From Vitrella brassicaformis CCMP3155 (taxonomy: Eukaryota; Protista; Chromerida): DNA of 64,000 bases. Below the pieces are notes generated by a model. It saw only the letters and a list, made by a program, of their open reading frames with translations. It was not told the DNA's origin and did no database searches. The stretch's first letter is position 1. Each line of letters starts with the position of its first letter. The translations under genes were made by a program, and so were the position numbers. Location: contig CDMY01000138.1 of assembly GCA_001179505.1 (NCBI GenBank), positions 1 to 64,000 on the forward strand, in the 5' to 3' direction. This document shows positions 35,008 to 63,200 of the stretch, piece after piece.

Positions 35008-35307
35008 NNNNNNNNNNNNNNNNNNNNNNNNNNNNNNNNNNNNNNNNNNNNNNNNNNNNNNNNNNNNNNNNNNNNNNNNNNNNNNNNNNNNNNNNNNNNN
35101 NNNNNNNNNNNNNNNNNNNNNNNNNNNNNNNNNNNNNNNNNNNNNNNNNNNNNNNNNNNNNNNNNNNNNNNNNNNNNNNNNNNNNNNNNNNNNNNNNNNN
35201 NNNNNNNNNNNNNNNNNNNNNNNNNNNNNNNNNNNNNNNNNNNNNNNNNNNNNNNNNNNNNNNNNNNNNNNNNNNNNNNNNNNNNNNNNNNNNNNNNNNN
35301 NNNNNNN
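35008..35307. other. Assembly gap (300 N)
   Basis: Run of n characters. Confidence 0.99.
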
Positions 35308-44118: not shown

Positions 44119-47100
44119 ATGGTGAAGGGCTTTCTCCTCCTCGCCCTTCTCGTGGCGCCCGCATGCACTCAGTGCCCATCTGTCAGCAACTCCACTGCTA
44201 TTAATTGTCCTTCCCGCCTACTGGAAGTGGCCGCCGGTTCCCGCAGGCAGCCTATGATTGGAGGCTATGGCGACAGTGCGGACGACATCCATGGGCAGCT
44301 TGTCGGCCAGAGCAGGTGGCGTGAGATAGAGGGAAGAATGGATGCGGGCGAGAAACTGCCGCCCTGCCAGACGAGGCAGGCGGAGGTTTTTTCGCTGCGA
44401 CTGACCCGCAACGACAAGCGGCTGCCATGGAGCTGGCACGATGATGCTCAGGGCGCCAATGCCGAGGTGCTGGATGCAGAAGACCACCCACCCTTCCTGA
44501 GGCAGATGTACGCATGCACTTAATATACTCCGGACACTGCTCAGTCTTGTTGTTTGTGTCTCTGGCTCATGCCAGCACCGACCCGCACACGGGCCGGGAG
44601 GTCTCTTGGCTGGGCTTCGGTCCAGGTCGCTACCTTGTGACGCCACCTAATGGAGACCGCCGAGTCTGCTATCGCTGGGCAGAGAGCCAAAACGAAGGAT
44701 TCACCTCCGCAATCCTCATCGCTTTCGACCATCCTCCACCGCCTGGGAAGCCCATCGTCTTTCTCGACACATGGTTCGGCTTCCGTCTCGGCGCGTCCGC
44801 CGCCTATGACTATGAGCATGTCCAAGGCCATTCCGACAGTCGGGAGCTGGATGTGGACCCGGATGCGATCAACTTGGGGCTGATCGACCTACAAGCGAGA
44901 GAGCAAGACACGCCATTGGAGGAGGCTGGCAGCAAAGGGAGTCAGCCACAAGGGCACGCTCCGCCTGCCGCCGGGATGGTGCGGACGTGCTGGCGGTCGG
45001 CCGCGGGCTTCGTCTATCACTTTGTCATGTCGCAGTCGACTTTGCAGATCTTCAAGATGGGCAAGATGATCGGAGAGGTAGCTGTGCCAGCGGCCATTGC
45101 GACCAACATGCTGACACCGAGCCCTCTATCGCTGGGATGCGACCACAGGGGCAGTAACTGTTTGAAAGGGAGGGTGAGGTATATGCATTATGTCAACTCG
45201 GGCACTCTGACCTCCGACATGAGCGGCGCCGCGCAACAAGTCGCCGACAATAGTGTCTTCTTTCGTCCTGTGTCAATTGGATCGACAGAGAAGTGTCCTC
45301 CCTACGCGCAGGTGCTATTGGCTAACGGCGATCCTGTTGAGGCCTACGTCGGCAAGCCAGCCGAGCGACCGAGCATCACTCACGCTGCCAAATATCTCCG
45401 GCGGGCGATGCCTCACGGCTCGTTGCTGAGTCTCAGGTGTGTGACCGAGGGCGCCAACCTGACGTACCACGGGAGTGGCGTGGAAGAGGACACCATCAAG
45501 TGCGGCGCCGTCAAGAGCGGAGAGTGGCCCGCAAGGATACTCGAGTGCATGAGTAAGCCAGTATTCATATGCCAACTCAGACGCGATGGATCGATGGATA
45601 TTTGCCGGCTGTCTGTGTCTGCAGAGGACTGCGACCCGACCAATGCCACATGGTGGAATGATACCGACTTGGGTGGTGCCGCTGTCAACCCTCGGTACAA
45701 GCTCGTCTCCCCCCGGCGCGCCACGAGACTGCGACACGGCGAGAGAGTCCAAATGCAGTGCGGCCCGGGCTATCTGCCACCCGTCAATCTCCCCTCCGAG
45801 ACCACCCTCTGGTGCAACGACGGCCACCTCGATCAGCTGGATCTGCCATGCAAAGGTGTGCTAGGGAGGAAAGGTCCAAACATTTTGATTGTTTATTGTG
45901 TCGTTGTCTCACTCATGTCTGCCTGTAGATATGTGCCCTTCGTTGATCCTGGCGCCGCCCGACTACACTCAGCCTCTTTCCCGTGTGCGCTATCGTGTCA
46001 CGGGTGGCGAGCAGGGGCGCCCAGAAGGCGCCACCCGCACCATCCGATGTGCCGAGGACTACCGCCCCTCAACGACTAGCGGGTACAAGCAAGATTCCCA
46101 GGTCATCTACTGCCGCCAAGGAAACTGGACGGATGTGGCGCTCCAGTGCATCGGGAGCTGCGGCCAGTTCCGGTTCCCTACACATGTCGACGCCACACGC
46201 TATGTGACCGACCCGCCATACGGCGAGGTCGCCACAGGTGCGTCAGTGACGGTGTCGTGTGCTGCGGGGTTTGTGCCGAGGAAAGGGCAGAAGGCTTCTG
46301 AGCGACTCGACTGCGTGTGCTTCGGCAAGAAGGACCAGTGCGACGATGCCCACCGCTGGAGGTACACCGAGCCGCGCCTCGACTGCAAAGCCTCGTGTGG
46401 ACGCCATCCCTTCGACACCAACACCACGGACCTCTACACGGTCGACTACGGCAACACAGTGCAGTCAGTCAGTCACAAGCATGCAGCCCCCACTGTGCCC
46501 TACCTGTCGGAGGTGCGCATCACATGCAACGCCACGGCTGGGTATGGTGTGCGTTACGGTCTCGAAGAAGCAGTCACGTCCCAGTGCACTGGAGGAACCC
46601 GAGACAGCAGCGACCCGTACACAAGAGTGGACATCCAGTGCTACAGTCAGAGGGGGGGGGGGAGGGGATCACGGACAAATGAGCGGGCACAGGAGACACA
46701 AGCTGTTTCTCTTTGAATGCACGCTGTCCTTGCAGGGAAGTGCCTGAGCCCTCCTGAGTCGATGCTGCCGTCCGGCGATGCCAGCAGGAAGTATTTGCTG
46801 ACGTACACGGGAGGTGCGCCGCGGACGGTGCCTTTCCTGCACGGCAGCTCCGTGGCTCTCTCCTGCGCAGCTAACGCCCACAAGGCCACCGACCAGATGG
46901 TCGACAAACAGACACTCGTGTGCATGGACGGCAACTGGACTCAGCGGGCTCTCACCTGCAAAGGTAGGTAGGCAGGTACACTAGCAGACAGACAGACAGA
47001 CAGTATAAGCCGAGCAAAGCTTAGAAACATGCTGCTGTCTGTCGTGGATGTTTCAATTTATCGATCAGCTGACTGCGGCCCTTGGACGCCGCTACCAACG

Positions 47101-50100
47101 ACCCGTTTTCAGACGTTGCCCCCGCAAGAGGAGCTGGTGCAGAGTCCTTCCCAGCTTCATGGCTTTAGGGTGCGTGTACAGTGCCAGCGAGACCGATCCA
47201 AGGCTGCCGTCACAGACCGCGAGCTGCCCAACGAGGAACAGCACGTCACCTGCCTAGACGGGCAGTGGACCCCTCTGACGATCCTCTGCAAAGGCATGCA
47301 CACACACATGCACACACCCGCACACACAAGAACACAGAAGCAGAATACATCCGCATGTGCTATCTCAAGCGGCTCCCACCTGTTTGCAGTTCCATGTGGG
47401 AAGCTTTCTTTGAAAGGGCCGTCGTCTCTGCTGACTACCGCCGGCCAGGGGGTGTCGTTCAGGTGGCCGGAGGGAGCTGTGCCCGAGCCGCGTGCAGTGA
47501 GCGACATGTATGTCCTCAGCAGTGAATCGCCGCTAAGAAGTCCTTCGCCCCACGGCACTCGGGTGACGATAGAGTGTGACACGGCCCAGCACTTCCATCC
47601 CTTCGCCGGCCCCGACACAAAGGACATCGTATGCACCGACGGGCATTGGAGCCAGCAGGACATAATATGTGGACGTACGTACGTACACACAAAAAGGACC
47701 GACCTGGCACACCACACGGCGCTACATAACATACTGCACGGGCAGCACTGCACTGCACACATGTGTCTCCTCTCTCTTTCCCTTCCACCTCTGTGTGCCT
47801 GTGGGTGCCTGCAGCTGACTGCCCCGTCTTCCCGTCCTTCGGCCCCCCATCCTTCTACCACTACACCAGCCTGGTCCGCCGGGTCTCATCCGTCGATCGC
47901 GTCATCGCACCCGAAGCCGCCAAGGCACCCTCCCTCGAAGCCCCAGTCGCTGTCATCAGCCCAGTGGCCCAGGAATTCTACCGCAAGGCTAGCTACCAGC
48001 CATGCGGCGCAAAGCTGAGCGTCCAGTGCAACCAACAAGGGAACTTCGCCCCCAGGATGGGTCCACGCCCAATGCGATCGAGACGGTGACGTGCGATCGT
48101 GGACGGTGCGAATTTAGAAATGTGTCAGTTCTTGCACGTGTTGGTTACCCTTCATTTCAGCATCGTGGGCGGTGGCACTTTCGAGTAAGCGTCGAATCGT
48201 GGGCGACATACTAAGGTGGAGTCCCTCATGTGTCTCCACAACGCCGCAGGTGTATGGCGCCGTGTGGCCCCTACCCGATTGAGAGGCTGTCTTTTCCTGA
48301 GCTCTACAGCATAAGGCCTTTGTCGTCGGCGCCGCCGAGAGAGGAGGCGGGAGAGCCCGAGGAAGGGGGCGCTGAAGAGAGGCCCGCGCCACTTTTCGTG
48401 CATGGCAGCCGGCTGCTGATCAAGTGCGACACGGCCCAACGTGCCGCTGCGACGCCCAGAGAGCCCGGGCAGGTCTCTGCCGTGTGTGTCAATGGGACAT
48501 GGTCTCCCGTCCCGCCACCCTTCATCTGCTCACGTGAGCTGCGCCCACAGACATCCAGACAGACAGACAGACAGGCAGGCAGGCACCTGTGGATATGTGT
48601 GTGTGTGCGTATGTGTGTGTTGTGCTGTGTTGTAGAGGAGTGTGTGGCCCCGCAGCTGCCGGCCTCCTACGAGGTGATGGGCACGGTCAAGTCCGCCTAC
48701 AGGCACGGCGGGTGCAGATCCGGTGCTTCACCGAGAGGTCCTTCTACAACGCCACCGAGAGCAGGCCATCCAACCCACAGACCGCCACTATCGTCTGTCA
48801 ACACGGCCACTGGTCTGAGCCGAACCCACGACTCGAATGCCGAAGTGGGCAATCAAAGACAGCTGCAGACCGTGACCCCCCGCCTATATATTTTGTGTCC
48901 GCTCAGAGTCGTGCCGCGACCTCTCAGAGGTTATCGATCACGACAGGTTTCCTTTCCGCCTTGTCTCTGAGCCTGAGGAACTGCAAGAGGACGCGGTATG
49001 CGAAGGCGTCCCCCGGCCACGACCCACCGAGCCGCCATCCACCACGCCTTTGCCGGAAAACGCCAGTGCTCTCGTCAAAGCCCTCGCCATGATACCCCCG
49101 ATGGAGCCCGACCCTGCCGCCACCCGCCCCAGGATCGACTTCCTTCTGTCTGACTTCCCGCGGCACGGTTCGTGAACACACATGAAAGGCGCCCGTTCCG
49201 TCTCGCTGTTTGTGCCTCCCTCTGAATATGCCGTGTGTCTGTCTCTGTGCATGCCATGCAAGGCAGGTTCGTGTGTGATATTCGGGTGTGCGGTGGGCGA
49301 GGGGGCAGATGTGGAGTCATTGCAATGGCGGTCGGTGTCGTGTGCTGCGCCTGGGGACACGCGCGGCAACTGGAAGGATGTGTTTGGGTCGAATGACTGC
49401 ACGACGCTGCGGTGCCTGGATGGGCAATGGACGCCGAGAGAGTTTGACTGTAAAGGTGAGAAGACGATGTCAGGCAGGCTACACGAGCCTTGTACGCATG
49501 AGAGAGAGTGTGTGTGTGCATGTAGATGACTGTCCTCCGCCCCTCAGCAAGAGGCACCTGCCGGGTGTGGTCTATGTCGAGGAGCACAAAGACGTATACA
49601 AACACGGAGAAGTCGAGTACCTCCAGTGTACAGGCTATGATAGGATCGCCAGCGGCTTTGCGGCCCTCCCGCCCCACCCCACTGATCACATCGAGACCGT
49701 CACATGCGACGCAGGGCGCTTTGAGGACGTCACCTTAATTTGCAGAAGTGAGCGACCAAATGATACCGTCCTAAGAAAATATGCCATTCAAGTGGCCACA
49801 TGGTGATCAGAGCGGTGTCCCCCGTTCTTCCCCCCCTTTGCTCCACTCGAGGCGTATGTGGTGTCTCCCACGCCTGTGTTCGACCCCGCCCTTCTCGACG
49901 CCGACCGCAGAGTGTTCCTCTACCAGCTGAACCCCGCTGAGGCGGACATGAAAGCCATGGCGGCTTTGGAGCCCCACTTCCGGCACAACAGTGGCCGGTG
50001 GATAGAGTGCGCCAAAGGGTGGAGCGACCCCTCTTGGCCCGCGCCCCGCCCCGACTTTGTCGAGTGCTACAATGGCACCTGGGCCCACCAGATAATCAGA

Positions 50101-53100
50101 TGCAGACGTACGTACGCATGCACGATAGATAAATCGAGAAAGGGATAGAGAGACGACCGAAGACACCAACAATCTATCTATCGGTACGCACTCAGGTCAG
50201 TGCCCGGGTGTGGCATTCCACCTGCTCAATCCGGCCTTGTACAAGGTCGAGTACAGCGGCCGCCGCCCAGAGCCCAAGAAGACGACCCGCCAGGCGTCCA
50301 GCGACCCGCTCGCAGACCTTATCAACAGGCTGCTGCCCACCAAGCCCGGCGAGCCCATCGACACCTCGCAGACCACGCAGAGAGAGCGAGACACGGCATA
50401 TGTCTGGGGCGCCCTCAACCGCAGCCGTTTCTACGAGTGAGACAGACAAGGCGCCGCATTCAATTCACCGACCTGCAGCATCTCCTATGTGGCGCCGTGT
50501 GTGTGTGCAGCGACGGTGTGTTCATGAAGATCACGTGTTTGGAAGGTGACCTGACGCGGCCCATCGTGGCCATCAAGGCGGAGCAGCAGGCGGCCCGTGC
50601 AAGGGGCGAACAGTGGCTGCCCACTGAGCTCGAGGACTGCAGTGACCACCAGTGCGACGTCATGTGCGCCAGGGGCACCTGGACGGAGCTCAAACACTAC
50701 TGCCACCGTGAGTGAGCACGCCACACACCTTATGGCACATGATGGATGGACGAGCGCACACACGCACATCCGTCCACGTGTCCTTCTCTGTATGCCTGTA
50801 GGCCGTTGTCCGCCGTTCATCCCCCCGGAGAGATCCCGCAAGCAGTGCGACCCGCCAGAGCACTGCAAAGAACCGGAGGACCTCTCCACGGTAAGCGAGA
50901 CATACATACCATGAGCGAGGCACTGACAATTCGACACAGCTTCCTGTCTCCCTCCGTTGGTCGGTCTCTGCCAGGAGGAGAGGAACAATCCGTTCTTCTC
51001 CCCAGACGACGGTCTCTGGCGGCACGGCTCTACCTTTCTGCTCAAGTGCACCTCGCCATTTTGTCCGCACCCTGCGCCGGAGAACTCGACTGTCCGATGC
51101 AACGACGGGGAGTGGGAAAAGACCACACTCGAGTGCAGACGTACGCACATCTCTGTGTGTGTGTGTGTGTAGCCAGACACGTGGACGCGCCTATGTGTGT
51201 GTGTCATGCAGGTCCTTGTCTGGCCAGGATGGATGTGCGTCTGTACCGGCCGGACGAGGAGGCCCTGCGCTACCAGGTGGCTGACGCCGAGGACAATGTC
51301 CCGCCGACCGGGGAGGACACTCCACGCATCGACGGCGAGACGGGCCAGCCACTGCCCCTGTACATCCATGGGTCACGGCAGCTAGTGTCGTGCAACACTA
51401 CGGGCGGCTACCAGTCGGTGCTGCCACGCCCCGCCGACATGACCGCCTGCCAGGACGGCGTGTGGACCCTCACCGCCATCATGTGCAGGCGCGACTGCCC
51501 GCCGATTGCCGACTACTTCGCTGCCTTTGGGGAGAGTCAGGCGAGATATGTGGTGGAGGGCGGGGGCGACTCGACGCGCCACGGGACGGTGCTGCAGGTG
51601 TCGTGCGCACCGCGGCACTCGCCTGTCGAGGGAGAGGAGGCCGAGACCGTCGAGTGCAATGACGGCACCTGGTGGCCGCTCATACTCAGATACAGAAGTG
51701 AGTGAGGGAGTGCGCGAGGCCATCACACATGAAAGGTATTGGTTCGTTCGGTTAGAAATGTGCGTGGACTATATTAAGTGGGCTTCGGCGCACGATCCAT
51801 CCCTGCTCGACACGTCGCAGTATTGGATCCACCGGCCGCAGGAGCATCTGGTCGACAAACTCATGCCCGCCGGACGGTCCCTCACCGTCATGTGTGCGCC
51901 CCTACACTCATCAGTCAGTACGCAGCCACAGTACCATCCATCCATCCATCCCTGCAGGTGTGGGTGGATGTGCGCATCCGTCTGTGCAGTCCTTTCAGGT
52001 GGCAGGGAGCACCGCACTGGACCGTCAGCAGATCCTGTGCGAAGACGGCGAGTACACCAAGCGACTCATACACTGCGAAGGTAAGTAGGCACGTGGCGGG
52101 CGCGAGTGCGTGAGCCGGCCAAGGCACGGCACGCGCAACAATCACATGATCTATCCATCTGCATGTCCATGGATGTTTCACTCCCTTTCTCCCTCCCTCC
52201 CTTCTTCACAGCCAACTGCCCGGAGTACACCCCTGAGCAGGACTACGGCACCGACCCCGACTTCGGCGGAGGGCTTATTGTGCAGGACGTCGGGGTGGGC
52301 CTCGACACCATCTATCACACACACTCCATCCGCAACGGGGCCACAAGACGCATCAAGTGCTGCCAGACCGGAGAACTGGCCTATCAGCTCGGCTCGCTGC
52401 CGGATGACGCCGATACCAGCTGGTTGGAAAGCTCCATCAAGTGCAGGTGGGGGAAATCAAAGGGCGGGATGGGTGCAGCGGAGTCGGCGACAAGGGGGGA
52501 TGGGATGGCCTCTGTGTGTCAGGTGGAACTGGGCGTCTTACCTGGATGAGCCGCCGTATGAGGATGAGGTGCGCTGCTACAACGGACAGTGGACCTTGCC
52601 AGCTCTACAGTGCTACCGTAAAAAAGAGAAAGAACACACTGCACCCCACCCCAACCACATCAGATGTCTCCTTGGCTGCCTTTGCGGTTCTGCCTTGTCT
52701 TTCTGTCTGGCTGCGCAGCCATGTGTCTGCCTTTCGGCCAGGAGATGGTGCACGCATCCGGCAACAGCAGCGACTACCTCCACCCCGTCACTAAACACGT
52801 CCTCGGCCCCATCAACGGCCTAGTGCCACCCGGTGCAGAGGCGCAGGTCCGGTGCGACAAGGGCTACCTTCCCGAGCCGCAGCAAGACCTCTGGAACACC
52901 AACCCCCCCGTGACGGTGAGGTGCACACGAGGCTACATGACGGCCCCCTACGTCTGCATCAAGACCTGCCCCAAGCCATACCGGGAGAAGCCCAAGATGG
53001 TGCGGTACAACATCGGTGGCGGCGACAGTGCCGAGTACGAGGCCCTCACGTACGAGCAGCTGCTCGCCCACCGGCCCTGGATCGTGCGGCACCGGGGCCG

Positions 53101-54320
53101 ATACTTTGCCTTTTGTTACACGCCTGACTGCCGGAGTGAGAATGCGACATCGCTCAATGACACGATAGCGTCGCGCTGGAATGGGACGGGCCGTGTGGAG
53201 AAGGGCGACATCGACAAGGACGAGCGCATATTGAGGAAACGGAATGTCGTCGAAGTCAGGAAATATATCTGGGGTTCGGTGGATGGATGGAGGGGCAGAC
53301 AGACAGACAGACAGACAGACAGAGGAGCTCACTCACTTGCGAACCCTCTGAGGCCGGACACGCCCTTCAGGTGTCTCTCTCTCTCTCTCTCTCTCTCCCC
53401 CTCCTCTGTCGGTGTGTATGTCTGTGTGTTGCAGGGTGCTTGAACAGGCGGAGGTCGGTGACGACCTTCGATTATTACAACGCGTGGCAATGGGCGACGA
53501 CCGCCGGAGTGGCGGCAGCGGGTCTGGCATCTGCTTTCGTGTTCCCGCCAGCTGCTATCGTGACGGGAGTATTGTTGGGGCTCGGGGTTATCGACTTTGG
53601 CAGCAGCCTGCAGTACCTACTGGACCAGACAGACAGACAGACAGACAGACAGAAACACAGACCACAAGAGTGCTCGAGAGGCTGGCTGGCTGGTTCGTGT
53701 GTGTGTCTGCCTGCAGCATCTATTATTTCAAGTGGTTTTGGCCCAAGGCCATGCACAACGGTTTCGCGGCAAGGGTGTACGGGGAGTGGGGGGCCAAGCA
53801 GTACGAGTGCCTGTGGGGCGTGTGGGTGCCCCGCCCTGACGCCACACTCGAGTGTGAGCAATCAAGGTTCCAGCAGACGTGCATCGACGCACACACCACC
53901 GTATGGACAAGGAAGAAACACGAAGTGAAACCGAGACACAGCACCAACACCGACACCAAGGCAGCACCACGAGGCGGCCGGGGCTGGCTCGCGGGGTTTG
54001 CCAGCTCCTTCCAATCGCTTAGCGGCCGACTGCGGCTGATGTCCAACATAGCTAATGACGTCGAAGGTCGATCAAGTGGTGTCGGGTCACTTTTGACAGC
54101 GCTCTTAGAGCTTGTACTAGCTGGTGGTGGTGTGTCGAGGAGTGAGAGGGGCGGCGGGGAAGCAGTGAGATTGGATGGGCTGGAGCCGGTGTCTGCGGCT
54201 GAGGTGGAGGTGGGCGACCAGATTCTCTCCTATGGCTCGGGCCGGCCACGACTGACCGAGGTGCATCACTGGGGTGCGTGGGGCGGAGACACGGAGGGGG
54301 GGGCCATCCATCTACCTGTC

Positions 54321-54355
<35 letters not shown>

Positions 54356-55346
54356 GCAGGTTTATTTCAGAGAGTCGTACCCAGGTACCCACACGAACAG
54401 ACATGGCTAAGGAGGAAAACACACTGTGTGTGACACCTGCATGTATGTGTCCGTGTCCGTCGTCGCATACGGACCTTGACCGATCGCAGCCCAGCCGACG
54501 CGTGTCATCGACATTGACGTGGCCACCACACCCTGCCCATCGGGAGCATCGACTTCGTCATCGCTCCGGCTCTCGCCCTCACACCGTCTTCCCGTCTTCA
54601 GGCAGCAGCAGCAGCACGGGAGACACAGGCCACTGGTGCGCCGAGTGGTGAGGGCTGACGAGGTGCGACTGGGGGACATGCTTGCCACCGTCGTGGCGCA
54701 CACTGCCCCACCCCGCCACACAGGCCTCTATTGTGCCAGCCACGAGACAGGGAGGGCCAGGGGCGACAATGTGACGATGGGACTGGAGGGGGAGGGGGGC
54801 GTGTTTGCTCATAGCTATGGAAGGGTCACCGGTGTGAGGGGCGCTACCAAGGTATGGTAGCGACGGGAAGCAGCTGCCAGAGGCCTGTCTTGTCCCTGGC
54901 TGTGTCCCCGGCTGTGTCTCTATGTGTGTGTGTGGTCTGTCTGTCTCAGCGCTGTGGTCTGGAGCTGTTGTACATGTTGGATTCCCACATGGTGGCAAAT
55001 GGCCTGGTCATCACCGACAGCGACGAGCCAATGGACGCACACATGCCTTACACGTACCTCTCAAACCTCGACACACGGTGGGGTGGGCGGGCACCTTCTC
55101 CTCTCCATCCATCCATCTCTTACGGCTCCAGTCTGGCTGTCTGTGTGTGTGGATGCAGGATGGTGTATTGGCTGTTCGGTGCGGCGGGCGGGGTCAACTC
55201 CTCCATCTTTAGAGCATACTGGAGGTCTGTATGTGTTCAGGTGATGGACTCCATGTTGCTTGGCTTGCTCGTGTGTGTGTGTGTGTGTGCAGGTGGAGTG
55301 TTGGGCGGAGCGACTTTGTGCAGAGCATCGTCATGAGGCGATGGAT
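44119..55346 (+). CDS. Giant secreted protein: signal peptide, LamG/ConA-like domain, about 22 Sushi/CCP modules, hydrophobic segment, Hedgehog-type Hint domain, C-terminal tail
   Basis: Signal MVKGFLLLALLVAPACT. Repeated C-P..HG...C...C.DG.W....C modules are joined by phase-consistent introns. C-terminal Hint motifs: CIDAHTTV, EVEVGDQILS, LRLSPSHRLPV, VRADEVRLGDML, MVANGLVI. TGA at 55344-55346. Two -1 frameshifts near 48051 and 48711. Confidence 0.8.
44575..45290 (+). other. LamG/concanavalin-A-like domain (part of the giant protein)
   Basis: FVYHFVMSQSTLQIFKMGKMIGE..SPLSLGCDHRGSNCLKGRVRYMHYVN resembles the LamG-like H.........y.nG.......l.iG......F.G.i..v..yn pattern. Confidence 0.5.
45296..53860 (+). 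repeat. Array of about 22 divergent Sushi/CCP modules (manual count)
   Basis: Examples: HGERVQMQCGPGY..WCNDGHLDQLDLPC, HGSSVALSC..VCMDGNWTQRALTC, HGTRVTIEC..VCTDGHWSQQDIIC and HGTVLQVSCAPRH..VECNDGTW. Confidence 0.8.
53880..55030 (+). other. Hint (Hedgehog/intein) domain with two insertions
   Basis: First Cys at TGC 53880 (QQT-CIDAHTTVW). Further motifs PVSAAEVEVGDQILSY..LTE|VYFRESYP|AQPTRVIDI..LRLSPSH (block-B His), VRADEVRLGD and RVTGV..ANGLVITD. Confidence 0.72.
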
Positions 55347-55868
55347 GGACAAATGAATGAATGGAACGGCGGCGACTGGACTCCCTCCCTCCCTCCCTCC
55401 CTCACTGTATGGTGGCCCGCCTAGTGCCAGAGAAGTAGCTGTGCCATCCATCTGTGTCATCTACCAGACTTTGAGACTCTGTTAGGCTTGTTTCGTGTTT
55501 GTGGCGTCCCCGGTAGACCTCTGTACCGCCGGCCAAATGGGATGGCTCGACTTCGAAATATATGTATCGACGGGAGTCTAGCGCCGCTCTCAAGTGCAGG
55601 CATCCATCCGTCAAAGCGACACCAGCTAATTGACTAACTACCCACCCCACACCCACCTGTCTGTTACACCCACGCACATACGCAGTGAATGAATGCACAT
55701 AGATAACATACAGCCTATTTATTGACTTACTACTAAAGACGGAAACCCAGTGCATGAGTGGCACGGCACCTCCTTCCATCACGCCACACAGCCACGCAGT
55801 CACTCACATCCCATCGCACAAACAGAAGTGCTCGTCTCGTCCACCCGTCGGTCCGTCTATCTATCTAT

Positions 55869-58030
55869 CTACTGCACCTTCTTTCTCTCGGCTGCTGCCC
55901 CTGTTTGGGGGACGGGCCGCTTGTCGGTCGCTGTGGCACTTCTTGTGATGAGAGGCGCCAGTGCGATGACGGCCACGAGCGAGAGGGCCGCGAGTGAGAG
56001 GAAGAGGACGTCCCAGCCGTAGGTGTCGGTGATGGTGGCCGTGAGGCTCCCCTGCAATATCGACCCCACGCTGCCAACACCATTCACAAAACCTGCACAC
56101 CACCCCACAGCAGCCATGGCCAGAGACACACACAACTCGCGTGAGTGTTGTGTATGCCCTCCACTGTATGCAATGCATTGCACACCGACCCGACCGAAGC
56201 TTTGTACCTGTGGCAGTGCCCATGGCGGGCTGCGCGTTGTGTTTCTCGCAGAGGTCGCTGCACGCAGCCCCCCCGAGCACAGAATCGGGCCCCGCCACCG
56301 CCAGCCCCACCAGGAACATCAGCACCATGTTCGGAAGCAACCCGAACCCACCCGCCTGAGGGGTATAGGGAGAATGGACAGATAGAGAGAGGGTGATCGA
56401 TGGCTCATGAATGAGCGGTCTGGTTGGCGGGCGGGATGGGCGGGGTGTGTGCTTGAGTGCGTCACGTACATGTGCATACGCCGCTGCGAGTGCGCCTGTT
56501 GCTGCCGACATCATGCCCACGACCAGCAGCCGCCGACCGCCGAAGTACTTGTCCGATAACACACTGCGAGGTTGGTTCGTCAGACGGACACACACACACA
56601 GCACACAAACAAGGAGAGGGCAGACCATGGCCTGTCTGCTTGGACTGCGTCGACGTTTACCGACCCGCAAGCAATCGAGCCGAGCACCCCGCCCACATCG
56701 AACAGCGACGACATGAACGCTGATTGACAACAAGCAGACAGACAGAGAGAGAGTCGCGTTTCTTCCACGCCTGTCGGTCGGTCGATCGGCCTTATTTTAT
56801 TTATCTGCCTGGCCACCAGCTTGTGAGGGTGGGTATCCGCCCTGTTTGGTGAGGAAGTATGGCAGCCACATCATCATGGTGTACCGCACCAGCTTGATGC
56901 AAAAGTACGCCACGCCCAAGTTCATCAGCCCCGGGATCAGCAGCACCTGCTCACACCACCATCCATCCATCCATCCATCCATCGCACCCACGTCTTCTTA
57001 AGACGCTGCACCCAAAGGCACCTGTCCCAGCGTCATTCTGTCAGTCCCCTGCCCTTTGTCGCTGCTGCTGCTGTTGGTGCTGGTACTTGATGGTCCGGTG
57101 GGTGGGCTAGCCGTGGAGGCATCTGAGTCTGCGGGGGCCACAGATGACTTGGGCCTCTCTGGCGACGGCTGGCTGCTGCCTCCCGTCACCTCGGCAGGAC
57201 TCTCCTTCATCAAGGCGAAGATGGCCAAGCCACAGAGACCCACCTGACAGACAGACAGACAGACAGACACAGACAGACAGGGCGAGGTGGTCCAGCACTG
57301 AGTGGGTGAGTTTGAGTGTGGCCTATGCATATGCATAATGGGATGCCAACTCTCTGACTGACCCAAGCAGCTGGCAGAGTGAAGGCGCTCCGCCATCCGA
57401 ATGTGGTCAATGCGAAGCCTGCGATGCTGTTGGACAGGACACCACCGATCTGCTGACACGTTGTCCACACCCCTGCAAGAGTGAATGCAACCACAACAAT
57501 GCCACCCATCCACCCACCCACACATGTGCTTCCTGCCTGCCCGCCTGCCAGACCCTGGTTGCGTACCTACCGAGTGTTTTGCCCCTATTGGTGGCGTCCA
57601 TCCACGGGTTGAGCGCCTTGATCATCATGGGGAAGCCCCCGCTCTGGGTCAAACCGTTGACGCCCCAGCACACCACCATTACCCACACAGAGCCACTGCC
57701 GTACGCAGCGAACACCAGGGCCGCCACAGCCGACCCCAGGTATCCCACCGTCAGCACCCTTCGCGGCCCATACACGTCGCCCAGGGCGCCTGTGAGGAAC
57801 TGCCCCACTGCATAGCAGACGAGGAAGCCCGTGTCGATGGAGCCCAGCTGCTGCCTCGAGACGCCCAGGTCGGTCTCGAGCGCGCTCTTGACGATGGACA
57901 GCGGCTTCCGGGTGAGGTACAGCGACGCGTACGTCACGTACGTCAGCACAAACATGATGCGCCTCCACTGCTGCACGTGCAGGGCTGCCGCCTCGGAAGC
58001 AGACGGCCCAGGATCATCTGCAGACACCAT
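55869..58030 (-). CDS. MFS organophosphate transporter, SLC37/GlpT/UhpC-like
   Basis: Traced in frame: YASLYLTRKPLSIVK..FLVCYAVGQFLTGALGDVYGPRR..NGLTQSGGFP..RG..GVWTTCQQIGG..YFCIKLVRYTMMMWLP..FDVGGVLGS..GPDSVLGG..GFVNGVGSVGSILQG. TAG at 55869. Confidence 0.9.
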
Positions 58031-58317
58031 CTTAGCCCGAATTACGCACAGATCTTCTTCCCTTGCGAGGAGACAAGTGGAGTGCCTGCCCTTCGGGCAG
58101 GCGTATCCGTAAAACAGTAAAGGGGTGTTTGGAAAATCCGTGAAACTGGAAGGGATGGCCGTGAGTAGTTTTCTTTTTTCCCTCCTTTGTTCGGCTGCCG
58201 AACGACATGTGGATGGCACCAGAAGCGAGAGCATACTGTCTAGTTTTGCTTAACCAAAACAGCTCTCGCATACGCTGCATACACGCATCGGAATTCCAGG
58301 TGGAAAAAACCCCGGTT

Positions 58318-58610: not shown

Positions 58611-58910
58611 NNNNNNNNNNNNNNNNNNNNNNNNNNNNNNNNNNNNNNNNNNNNNNNNNNNNNNNNNNNNNNNNNNNNNNNNNNNNNNNNNNNNNNNNNN
58701 NNNNNNNNNNNNNNNNNNNNNNNNNNNNNNNNNNNNNNNNNNNNNNNNNNNNNNNNNNNNNNNNNNNNNNNNNNNNNNNNNNNNNNNNNNNNNNNNNNNN
58801 NNNNNNNNNNNNNNNNNNNNNNNNNNNNNNNNNNNNNNNNNNNNNNNNNNNNNNNNNNNNNNNNNNNNNNNNNNNNNNNNNNNNNNNNNNNNNNNNNNNN
58901 NNNNNNNNNN
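58611..58910. other. Assembly gap (300 N)
   Basis: Run of n characters. Confidence 0.99.
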
Positions 58911-60082: not shown

Positions 60083-60265
60083 ACCCCGGTCGGAGAATTC
60101 ATATAGGGGATGATCAGCTTCTGCGAGCTTAGGGGCAAGAAAAAGATAGCGTTTCAAACCGGAGATCTGTCTGTCGCTGTATCGTGTGCTGGCGAGCGCC
60201 GCTCGTCCATCCGTCCCTCCGTCCCTCTGAAGCTGTCGTCTGGACGAGTGAGTGGTCCCCCGGGG

Positions 60266-63200
60266 ATGTCGCAGCAGATCATCGTGGGCGGTCGTGCCCT
60301 CACAGTGGGTGAGATCATAGCCGTTGCGCTGCGGAAGGCCAAGGTGGTGCTGGACCGCGCCACCCTCGACAAGGTGCAGCAGGACTTCGACAGGAAGTTC
60401 AGGGGCTCATCCACCACACCATGGCAGATCCCGCCATCCCCGGCCACACCCGCGCCCCTCATCCCATCATCTGGCGTCGGCAAATGCCCCCCTCTCCTCA
60501 GCCACGAGACCCTGCGGGCCGTCGTGTTGCTTCGGCTGGTGACGGTGCTGCACCAGCAGAGTGGGGTGCGGCCTCAGGTGGCCGGGTACCTGACCGAGCT
60601 GCTGAACAACGGCGAGGACAAGGCCGCCAGCGACATCTTGAGCGAGCTGCAGCAGCCCGCCCTGAGTGACCAGCAGGCGATGCAGCTGCTGCTCAAGCAT
60701 TACGGCGTCGAGGGCCTATCGGCCGAGGAGGCCTCGGTCTTCTGCTCGGCGGGGTACCCCTGGACGGTCGCACGGCTGGTCATGAGCTGGCAGCTGGGCC
60801 AGGTGCTCGCACAGATGGCCGACTGCTCGTCGGTGCTGGCCATCGAGGCGCTGCAGCTGCCGACGCCCTTTCTTGACCTGGACGGGCGGCGTCAGCACGA
60901 GGGTGCAGTGGTGGCGGCCAACCGCATCAAGTGGCTCCTGGAGGAGTCCAAGACGGCCAAGAAGCCAGACGAGACCCACAAGACGAGACTCATGGCCCGC
61001 TGCGTGTACGTCCATGGCGCCCTGGTCGACAGCCTCGAGCAGCTCATGCGAGCCATCAGACCGGAGCTCAGGGCATTCGCCAGCAGGAAGAGTGTGGCCG
61101 AAGGTAGGTACCTAAGAGACAGACAGCGAGTGCGTGAACTCATGAGCGCCGGGGGGAGGGAGGGAGTCATGGCGTGGGTGCTGTGCTGTGCTGTGCAGGT
61201 GATACTGCGTCTGTTGTCGAGGGCGATGAGGATCTGAATGCGTTGCCGCTGATGGTCCCCGCCATGTCTGTGAGGGAGGCCACCATACGCTGCGCCAAGA
61301 CTGCCATCCAGGTAGGTACACCACACCACTCATGGCTCACCGATGCATCACGGCACCGCACTTGACTGCACCTGGCTGTGGGTTGGCTGTGCAGGAGGCC
61401 GAGCTGGTTCTCGAGCGAAACCAGGCCACCATTCCAGAGGTGCGCACAGCTTAGCTAGCTTCACCGGGTGGTGTGCATCGTCTGTCTCATCAGTCAATCA
61501 AGCTGGTGTCTGCCTGTTAGGATGTGGCCCCGCTGCCCGACACCCCTGCCTCTGCGGACCGCACAAACATCACTGTTCCCCCCACTGCAGAGGTGGGCCA
61601 CATCACGGACGGATAATACAACAAAAGTATCAGCCCACGCCAACGCCCATGCCCACAACCTGTGTGTGTGTGTATGTGTGTGTGTGATGGTCGCTGCGCC
61701 AGACCCACTCGTCAGAGTCCCACGCGCGTCTCGAGGGAACTCTGAAGGACATCAAAACGTCGATTGCGGCATTCCAGACGTACGTGTGCGTCAGTCAAGA
61801 AGCGGAGAGATCGACGCAGAGAGCGATCGTGTTGTGTATGTGTGTTTGCCGCGTGTGCAGGAGTGCCCTCCCCAATGGCGACCTGCCAAGCGTCCTGACG
61901 GACGTCGAGAAGGTGCGTGTCCTGTCCTCTCTGGCCCATCTCATCTAGCCACAAATCCATCCTTCCATCCATCCATCCACTTATTTATGGGTTGCCTTTG
62001 CCTGCCTGCCTGCCTGGCTGCGTGCGCTTGTGCGTCACGTTGCAGTCGTTGGATCTCCTGAGGAGGAGTGTGCTGTGCGAGGCCGCCGGGGCGCTGCAGA
62101 TCTTCGCCAAAGAGGAGGTCGACAAGTACAGAAAGGCCCTGGAGGTGCGGTGGGCAGCTGACCGAACAAACACACCACAATGACAATGGACATCCTGCGC
62201 TTGGGTCGACGATGTGTGGCTGGCTGGCTGGATGGATGGGTTTGTGTGTTCGTTCAGGCGATGGAGAAGAAGAAAAAGAACGTGTCCACCAAGCTCACCA
62301 TCGGCAGGCCCGTCGAGAGATTCAGACAGTGCCTCAACTCAGTCGTCTACCAGGTGGGCACACGCACTCCCCCACTCACTCACACAGGTCCCCCTCTCTC
62401 TCTATCTCTCTCTATCTGTCTTGTCTGTCTCTTGTTTGTGCCTGTGGTGTTTGGGTCGTCAGGATGCCGGCGGCAGGATGGACAAGTGCGACGAGTGTCT
62501 TTTGGGTCAGCTGACGGCGGCATGTCTTATCGGCATGGCAGACAGCCTCGAAGACATACTCACCGTCAGAAATCAGGTCCGTTCCTCTGTGCGTGTGTGC
62601 GTCTATCGGGTCAGCTTTGGTCTGCTTGGTGTGCTGTGGTGTGCTGGTTGATTGGGTGGGTGCAGGAGACGCGCAAGCCGAAGGTAGCCAAGGGAACGCA
62701 GGACTACACACCCATACAGATGGCCATTCGAAAGCAGGTCCCTCCCTCCCTCCCTCCCTCCCTCCACAATTTCGCTCTCCACACCAATTGTATGTGTATG
62801 GCTGTGTAGGTGATGCGCGCCATCGCCGATGTGTTTGAGCGCCACGGCGCCGTGCAGATCGACACGCCCGTCTTCGAACTCAAGGTGCGGCCGGGCGTCC
62901 GTCAGACGGACACAGACAGACAGACGAAGAGAGAGCAACGCACCCACGCACCCCATCACTCACCTCACGTGTTGGGCTCGCCGCTTCGCTTCTGGCTCTT
63001 CAGGAGACTCTCATGGGCAAGTATGGCGAGGACCAGAAGCTCATCTACGACCTCAAAGACCAGGTAAAATACCCCCCCCCCCACACACACACAGACAGAC
63101 AACACAACCTCTTTCACCCCGTGGCTCATCAATCCAATCCAATCCTATCCTACACACACATTATGTTTGTTGCACCATACCACCAGGGTGGCGAGCAGCT

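Follow-up and report, generated by a model that had tools for sequence, protein, structure and literature searches.

We analyzed a window of 64,000 nucleotides (nt) of Vitrella brassicaformis CCMP3155 (assembly GCA_001179505.1, contig CDMY01000138.1, positions 1 to 64,000 of the forward strand; "the window" is this whole stretch) and found a large gene that appears to join a long array of Sushi modules to a C-terminal Hint domain of the Hedgehog type. The putative secreted protein of about 2790 amino acids (aa) would consist of a signal peptide, a probable ConA/LamG-like domain, about 20 extended CCP modules and a Hog-type unit, which is formed by the Hint domain and a tail of 62 aa. The initial annotation had read this locus as a self-cleaving, lipid-anchored surface adhesin. 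Its architecture (signal peptide, ConA/LamG-like domain, CCP array, Hint with tail) was recovered in three paralogous loci, whereas the cleavage is something we infer.

The public protein of the gene (CEL93093.1 / A0A0G4EC72, 2743 aa, here referred to as P0003) maps to positions 44254-55356 of the + strand with zero mismatches, which is where the gene had been placed from the raw sequence. With the splice junctions reconstructed, the gene comprises 32 exons and 31 GT/GC-AG introns of 58-184 nt. The only database name is an automatic one, Sushi domain-containing protein, and the paralogs likewise carry automatic names only. Two further loci of the family were compared, namely L001 with protein P0002 (CEM24571.1) and L002 with proteins P0004 (CEM10021.1) and P0001 (CEM10019.1). 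The features of the gene, all on the + strand, are as follows.

44119-44253, + strand: N-terminal extension with a signal-peptide-like start (MVKGFLLLALLVAPACTQC), an open frame contiguous with the public start at 44254.
44254-55356, + strand: coding span of CEL93093.1 / A0A0G4EC72, from the exact protein-to-window mapping.
44577-45230, + strand: beta-rich conserved domain, candidate ConA-like / Laminin_G_3 (P0003 residues ~86-300), from conservation and ESM.
45291-53275, + strand: extended Sushi/CCP modules (P0003 residues 324-2289), from a module hidden Markov model (HMM) with decoy control and from Pfam Sushi.
53435-53879, + strand: linker exons with a half-CCP-like piece (Y.CLWG.WV..PD..L.C) and then the QQT of the putative cleavage site, conserved in three paralogs.
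53880-55018, + strand: predicted Hedgehog-type Hint domain (P0003 C2403-D2681, five exons), from fold comparison.
53880-53882, 54372-54374, 54582-54584 and 55016-55018, + strand: codons of the Hint residues Cys1 (C2403), E2534, H2569 (of SPSH) and D2681, respectively.
53907-54167, + strand: variable insert between the strand CIDAHTTVW and the strand L-E-x-V-x-A-x-E-V-x-V-G-D, open and in frame in three paralogs.
54078-54134, + strand: hydrophobic helix within the insert, from a Kyte-Doolittle (KD) scan.
55019-55356, + strand: aromatic-rich (Trp, Tyr, Phe) tail of 62 aa in three exons, at the position of the sterol/adduct recognition region of Hedgehog.

The assignment of the C-terminal part is based on structural comparison. 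Residues 2360-2743 of P0003 were modelled with AlphaFold from a three-sequence alignment, and the model was compared with known structures. The best match in the PDB by Foldseek was the C-terminal autoprocessing domain of Hedgehog (1AT0; E 1e-3, probability 1.0). It was followed by 6TYY, the D46H mutant of the same domain, and then by more than 30 inteins; the 36 matches next to 1AT0 were all Hedgehog or intein entries. The VIA alignment to 1AT0 reached a Z of 8.5 with a root-mean-square deviation of 3.0 Å over 98 aa (model residues 175-322 against 1AT0 residues 303-400). Among 550,000 Swiss-Prot models the top 18 were Indian, Desert and fly Hedgehog as well as Warthog, matched over model residues 145-321. 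The Hint model was aligned over its C-terminal two thirds only. Additionally, ESM features of the region led to Hint, Vint, PT-HINT and intein clusters, and the paralog P0001 is named Hint domain-containing protein in UniRef. Taken from the predicted structure, the C-terminal ~340 aa would adopt a Hint fold of the Hedgehog type.

The positions of the putative catalytic residues are conserved within the family. The Cys of QQT|CIDAHTTVW at 53880-53882 and the His of LSPSH at 54582-54584 were found exactly where the initial annotation had placed them. C2403 is part of a motif T|C-I-D....W, which is invariant in three paralogs and located before the conserved strand L-E-x-V-x-A-x-E-V-x-V-G-D. The motif L-S-P-S-H-R-L-P is invariant as well, with Ser replacing the Thr of TxxH, and lies within the structurally aligned range. 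Two further invariant motifs are V-Y-F-R-E-S-Y and L-E-L-x-Y....S-H-x-V-A-N. The range aligned by VIA opens with E2534 opposite residue 303 of 1AT0 and closes with D2681 opposite residue 400; these are the ends of the aligned ranges and not a residue-by-residue assignment. Residue 303 is the catalytic Asp (D46 of HhC) and residue 400 is Cys143. At the probable position of the catalytic Asp (D303/D46) the Vitrella domain carries Glu, not Asp, and the position of the motif-J Cys is occupied by Asp. In Drosophila Hedgehog C258 and T326/H329 are described as active-site residues (PMC7906309).

The insert differs in length between the three paralogs (~58, 91 and 100 aa) and is partly conserved (SSFQSLS.RL). 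All three carry a hydrophobic 19-mer in it (KD 1.4-2.2), and the low-confidence AlphaFold model predicts a helix at model residues 111-124. An intron behind CIDAHTTVW was considered for this stretch and ruled out, as the stretch is open, in frame and partly conserved in the three paralogs. The insert could affect the activity of the Hint domain.

The tail is strongly conserved among the paralogs (DEPMDAHMPYT.LSNLDTR.VYWLFGAAGV...FRAYWRW). A helix was predicted at model residues 356-383, likewise with low confidence. Length and position of the tail fit a sterol/adduct recognition region. Pfam and PDB-sequence profile searches revealed no resemblance of its sequence to known sterol-recognition regions.

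Upstream of the Hint domain the repeats were analyzed with a module HMM that was iterated within the three paralogs. At an independent E-value (i-E) < 0.01, P0003 contained 15 modules and each of the paralogs P0002 and P0004 contained 17, and reversed or shuffled decoys gave none at all. P0003 carries further modules, four marginal and about three degenerate, so that the roughly 22 Sushi modules counted initially are a fair number of cysteine modules (15 significant, 4 marginal and ~3 degenerate). The modules are ~75-95 aa long, and the consensus of the 48-module alignment (xCP...Y...HG...C...P...C..G.W....L.C) shows the CCP signature C-P...HG...C...C..G.W...C. The profile of these 48 modules matched complement factor H (2.9e-10), the factor XIII B chain (1.1e-7), CR2 and factor-H-related proteins.

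Pfam detected the modules poorly. On the whole proteins (2.4-2.7 thousand aa) no family was reported, Sushi included, and raw exon translations gave sub-threshold Sushi matches only. Since scans of whole proteins were blind even to Sushi, the proteins were scanned in slices. Pfam Sushi (PF00084) then exceeded the gathering score on the slice of P0003 residues 488-727 (21.3 versus 20.7 bits) and matched 4 of the 48 single modules at E <= 0.01, most modules remaining below the threshold. As read from their sequence, the repeats are true but extended CCP modules. Phase 1 was found for 19 of the 31 introns, and most CCP module borders coincide with a phase-1 intron located one residue past the fourth Cys. 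The modules are symmetric 1-1 exons, like those of animal CCP genes. Many introns of the gene contain (GT)n or (ACAG)n microsatellites (window positions 44508-55292).

The open frame of the public start (44254) continues upstream to an in-frame ATG at 44119, and the public model omits the extension between the two. Its hydrophobic segment (MVKGFLLLALLVAPACTQC) scores 1.71 on the Kyte-Doolittle scale over 19 aa, in agreement with the signal peptide that had been proposed from 44119. P0004 starts with a clear hydrophobic segment as well (KD 2.0). The N-terminus of P0002 is signal-like by eye, yet below the scan threshold of 1.4.

The following domain is the best conserved part of the family, with a mean column identity of 71%. 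ESM feature searches with two paralogs returned nearly exclusively Laminin_G_3 / ConA-like clusters (0.90-0.92). Neither Pfam nor the PDB-sequence and fold searches gave a match to LamG/ConA (PF13385 clan). The AlphaFold model of the domain is all-beta but poor (pLDDT 37), and Foldseek and a wide VIA search with it yielded scattered matches only (probability <=0.2). Of the LamG-like domain claimed initially, the language-model leads are consistent, while support by HMM or fold is missing; the domain is likely LamG-like. In P0002 and P0004 a small Cys-rich insert (CGDGEV...EECD) follows at residues ~345-385, which the window copy does not have.

Several observations weigh against the interpretation as a functional Hint-bearing adhesin. 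First, the Hint domain is not seen by sequence models. None of the Pfam Hint families (PF01079, PF13403, PF14623, PF07591 and PF14890) matched any of the three paralogs at E values up to 10, in a scan which covered whole proteins, Hint slices and raw exons, and the family profile found no Hint among the PDB sequences. The expectation that a Hint HMM or a structure prediction would confirm the domain was thus borne out in one half only: the HMMs miss it, and the predicted structure matches nothing but Hint folds. Second, the AlphaFold model of the region is poor (mean pLDDT 41.7), and the structural alignments miss the first strand, beginning at model residue 175 (VIA) or 145 (Foldseek), with Cys1 at 44. 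The list of Hint matches is not simply an artefact of a poor beta model, because the equally poor N-terminal model gave scattered matches only. Third, Thr rather than Gly precedes Cys1. Fourth, the insert and its hydrophobic helix are located directly past the first strand, where a membrane-spanning helix would preclude the Hint fold. Since a true membrane span would part Cys1 from the remaining fold, the helix is more likely peripheral or lipid-binding.

Fifth, a phmmer search with the first Hint exons against 1.84 billion representative proteins returned only two proteins, both of them paralogs; P0003 was recovered by a follow-up search. No relatives beyond the Vitrella paralogs were found by exhaustive phmmer and three word-indexed searches, so that both AlphaFold models were built from only three aligned sequences and are of low confidence. 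Finally, the window copy shows two frame breaks relative to the paralogs and no RNA coverage in the compared part, as detailed below.

As the most likely mechanism we propose a Hedgehog-like autoprocessing in the secretory pathway. Cys2403 would attack the carbonyl of Thr2402, aided by His2569 of SPSH, to form a thioester. The thioester would then be resolved by a nucleophile, which Glu2534 and the C-terminal tail may position, and the LamG-like/Sushi ectodomain of ~2400 aa would be freed from a Hint fragment of ~340 aa. Autocleavage before Cys2403 is fairly probable, and reasonable to assume because Cys1, the SxxH motif and the acidic residue are present and invariant among the paralogs. An anchoring of the Sushi array to a sterol, another lipid or the wall is speculative and at best a tentative suggestion. 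It is also rather doubtful whether the protein carries a distinct membrane-coupled Hog unit, in which the insert helix and the aromatic tail would dock on the membrane, recruit a sterol, lipid or wall hydroxyl and tether the Sushi adhesin of ~2400 aa to the surface or the sporangial wall. If this were true, Hog chemistry would for the first time be seen to produce a lipid- or wall-anchored adhesin outside animals.

The fate of the thioester could be a simpler one. Water or a small thiol may resolve it, in which case the Hint domain would act as a protease only and the Sushi array would be shed, soluble or wall-bound, with no lipid anchor. The adduct of non-animal Hog proteins is not known (PMC2362128). 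Furthermore, the probable exchange of the catalytic Asp to Glu, the exchange of the motif-J Cys to Asp and a tail in which no known sterol-recognition region could be recognised fit this reading. However, the conservation of the 62-aa tail and of the hydrophobic helix in the insert among the paralogs suggests a role beyond plain hydrolysis, and the invariant acidic residue of YFRESY probably takes the position of the Hedgehog Asp that is needed for cholesterol transfer. Considering both sides, a mere protease is possible, although we would not expect it.

The state of the window copy raises another question. Two breaks of the reading frame were located within the Sushi array.

48040-48105, + strand: frame break 1, from frame 0 (LSVQCNQQGNFAP) to frame 2 (DGSTPNAIETVTCDRGR); seen by tblastn of P0002 and in the three-frame view, with P0004 in agreement.
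48690-48722, + strand: frame break 2, from frame 2 (YEVMGTVKSAYRHGG) to frame 1 (VQIRCFTERSFYN...RLECR); seen by overlapping tblastn segments and in the three-frame view.

The first break is located near 48045-48060 at a C run and the second one near 48700-48712 at GGCGGG. Judging by the homology to P0002 and P0004, there is no space for an intron at either switch. The public model uses an upstream donor instead at break 1, by which the third Cys of the module is lost, and skips the remaining 42 aa of the module at break 2. An assembly error as their origin is unlikely, as the contigs derived from the reads of run X3 contain 71 of 71 sampled words of the region 48030-48730; these reads may be the assembly's own source. 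The remainder of the gene is intact, including the Hint domain.

Expression was assessed for positions 50000-55999, which cover the 3' part of the gene. Two transcript-like runs, both small (25-28 million letters), showed no coverage of 50000-55500 and no splice joints. Contigs begin only at 55533 and are identical to the window from there (100%); the convergent MFS transporter gene downstream is their probable source.

With two Sushi frame breaks and no detected RNA, the window copy may be a decaying member of the family. In a more far-reaching form, the copy would be without function or would encode a Hint that is only a structural pseudo-enzyme; the architecture of the family would still be real, but this gene would yield no processed adhesin. 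In favour of this are the breaks seen against both paralogs, in a stretch of which the read contigs contain every sampled word, the missing RNA on 50000-55500 next to DNA which the same runs do contain, and the public model being forced to skip pieces of two modules. On the other hand, the other ~2500 codons are open, spliceable and conserved with all Hint motifs, and more damage would be expected in an old pseudogene. The partial loss of two modules among ~20 need not inactivate a repeat protein, and the RNA sets are small. We regard such a loss of function as unlikely.

Whether the Sushi array and the Hint domain belong to one gene was examined in the paralogs. P0002 is a single gene model with the same domain order as P0003. 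In the annotation of L002, P0004 (2435 aa, Sushi) is followed 212 nt further on by P0001 (400 aa, Hint). However, linking exons are present between the two models (L002:9480-10270) and run into the Met of P0001. Because these exons lie between both models, the split looks like an annotation artefact. Judged by the coding sequences, the fusion of Sushi to Hint is conserved in all three loci.

That the Hint exons form a separate downstream gene and the fusion is a product of gene prediction is very improbable: one of the three public loci is indeed annotated as two genes and the joining introns in the window have no RNA evidence, but the linking exons of L002 (GCLQRRRTIET, ...IWRIFRIGPPSSV and HVYYFKWFWPQQ) occupy the 212-nt gap and the end of the upstream model, HVYYFKWFWPQQ continues into the second Met, these exons are conserved with the single-gene paralogs, order and linker are kept in 3 of 3 loci, and a Hog domain would lack a substrate if no cargo and signal peptide preceded it.

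A transmembrane anchor between the Sushi array and the Hint domain was considered and rejected, as no conserved span was found. In the window copy one linker exon encodes a strongly hydrophobic stretch (KD 2.17; window positions 53500-53560, P0003 residues 2323-2341), which is specific to this copy and not shared by the paralogs. P0004 carries an additional ~150 aa before the Hint domain (residues ~2200-2390) with an acidic cluster (WDQDPIKDDFVG) recalling a C2-like domain.

Compared with known systems, the protein is closest to the Hog class. Hog proteins with varied cargos have been described from animals, nematodes, choanoflagellates, fungi and many protists including alveolates (PMC2362128). 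Examples are Warthog, Groundhog and Quahog of nematodes and Hoglet of choanoflagellates, besides proteins of dinoflagellates, Cryptosporidium, red algae and moss (PMC2362128). The Vitrella protein shares with them the secreted cargo followed by a C-terminal Hint domain with Cys as first residue, the (T/S)xxH motif, an acidic residue that probably takes the place of Asp303, and an extension of ~60 aa. Additionally, its Hint finds its closest structural counterparts in the C-terminal domains of Hedgehog. Non-animal Hog domains, such as those of moss and red algae, have Ser, Thr or Asp instead of the motif-J Cys (Burglin, PMC2362128), which is in agreement with the Asp in Vitrella. In contrast to Hedgehog and other Hog proteins, the cargo consists of a LamG-like domain and a Sushi array of ~2400 aa. 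The Hint domain itself is missed by all Pfam Hint models and carries an insert of 60-100 aa with a hydrophobic helix after the first strand. It further differs by Glu at the probable position of the catalytic Asp, Thr for the Gly before Cys1 and no detected sterol-recognition similarity.

Arrays of CCP modules are known from factor H, factor XIII B, CR2 and apicomplexan Sushi proteins. These share the tandem four-Cys modules with the pattern C...C..G.W...C, and most module borders coincide with phase-1 introns. However, the Vitrella modules are longer (75-95 versus ~60 aa), with a long first half, and are mostly below the Pfam threshold. Furthermore, the array ends in a Hint domain, not in a membrane anchor or a free C-terminus.

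The same Hint fold is found in inteins, BIL and pretoxin-HINT domains, and many inteins as well as Tetrahymena BIL2 aligned to the model with Z values of 6-8. A block near the C-terminus of the Vitrella domain reads LELLYMLDSHMVANGLV, which is intein-like. Nevertheless, the domain ends with ...VANGLVITD-SD; there is no His-Asn, no downstream nucleophile and no C-extein. It is terminal in a secreted protein with only the 62-aa tail behind it, and neither a toxin nor the second half of a host protein follows. In addition, Hedgehog-type proteins rank above inteins in both PDB and Swiss-Prot. An identity as intein was rejected for the absent His-Asn end and C-extein.

HINT domains have been noted in chromerids before (PMC4501334), where the examples in the supplementary list are Chromera genes only (PMC4501334). 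Among the papers covered by a full-text search, none contained both 'Hint domain' and 'Sushi domain', which is in line with the initial impression that this combination had not been described. The Hog protein class as such is known; the very large Sushi cargo is new, and the Hint domain is divergent, with its insert, a Glu at the probable Asp position and the Thr before Cys1.

Besides the gene itself, some features of its surroundings were recorded. Downstream a convergent gene on the minus strand (55533-58234) encodes an MFS transporter domain (57407-58234, Pfam 4.6e-22), and an aromatic amino acid lyase-like open reading frame is located on the + strand at 60110-61237 (4.2e-13). Two assembly gaps of 300 N (35008-35307 and 58611-58910) do not touch the CEL93093.1 gene. 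Between 4 and 18% of the 31-mers sampled from window positions 48030-48730 were present in metagenome runs of marine sediment and microbial mats, which points to near relatives, either of Vitrella itself or of the gene family, in the environment.

The locus shows that curated HMMs miss this Vitrella branch of the Hint superfamily. Hint domains of the Hog type are found in many protists, and a processed cargo with its attached adduct is not known outside animals and nematodes. In Vitrella, which is free-living but related to the apicomplexan parasites, the Hog unit follows a cargo that can be recognised as an adhesion array, and comparison is possible across three paralogs. If the protein is cleaved, it would provide a tractable system in which to identify what a non-animal Hog domain naturally attaches to its cargo. 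Cleavage, especially with a transfer to a sterol or a wall polymer, would mean that Hedgehog-style lipidation is an old route of surface tethering and not an invention of animal signalling.

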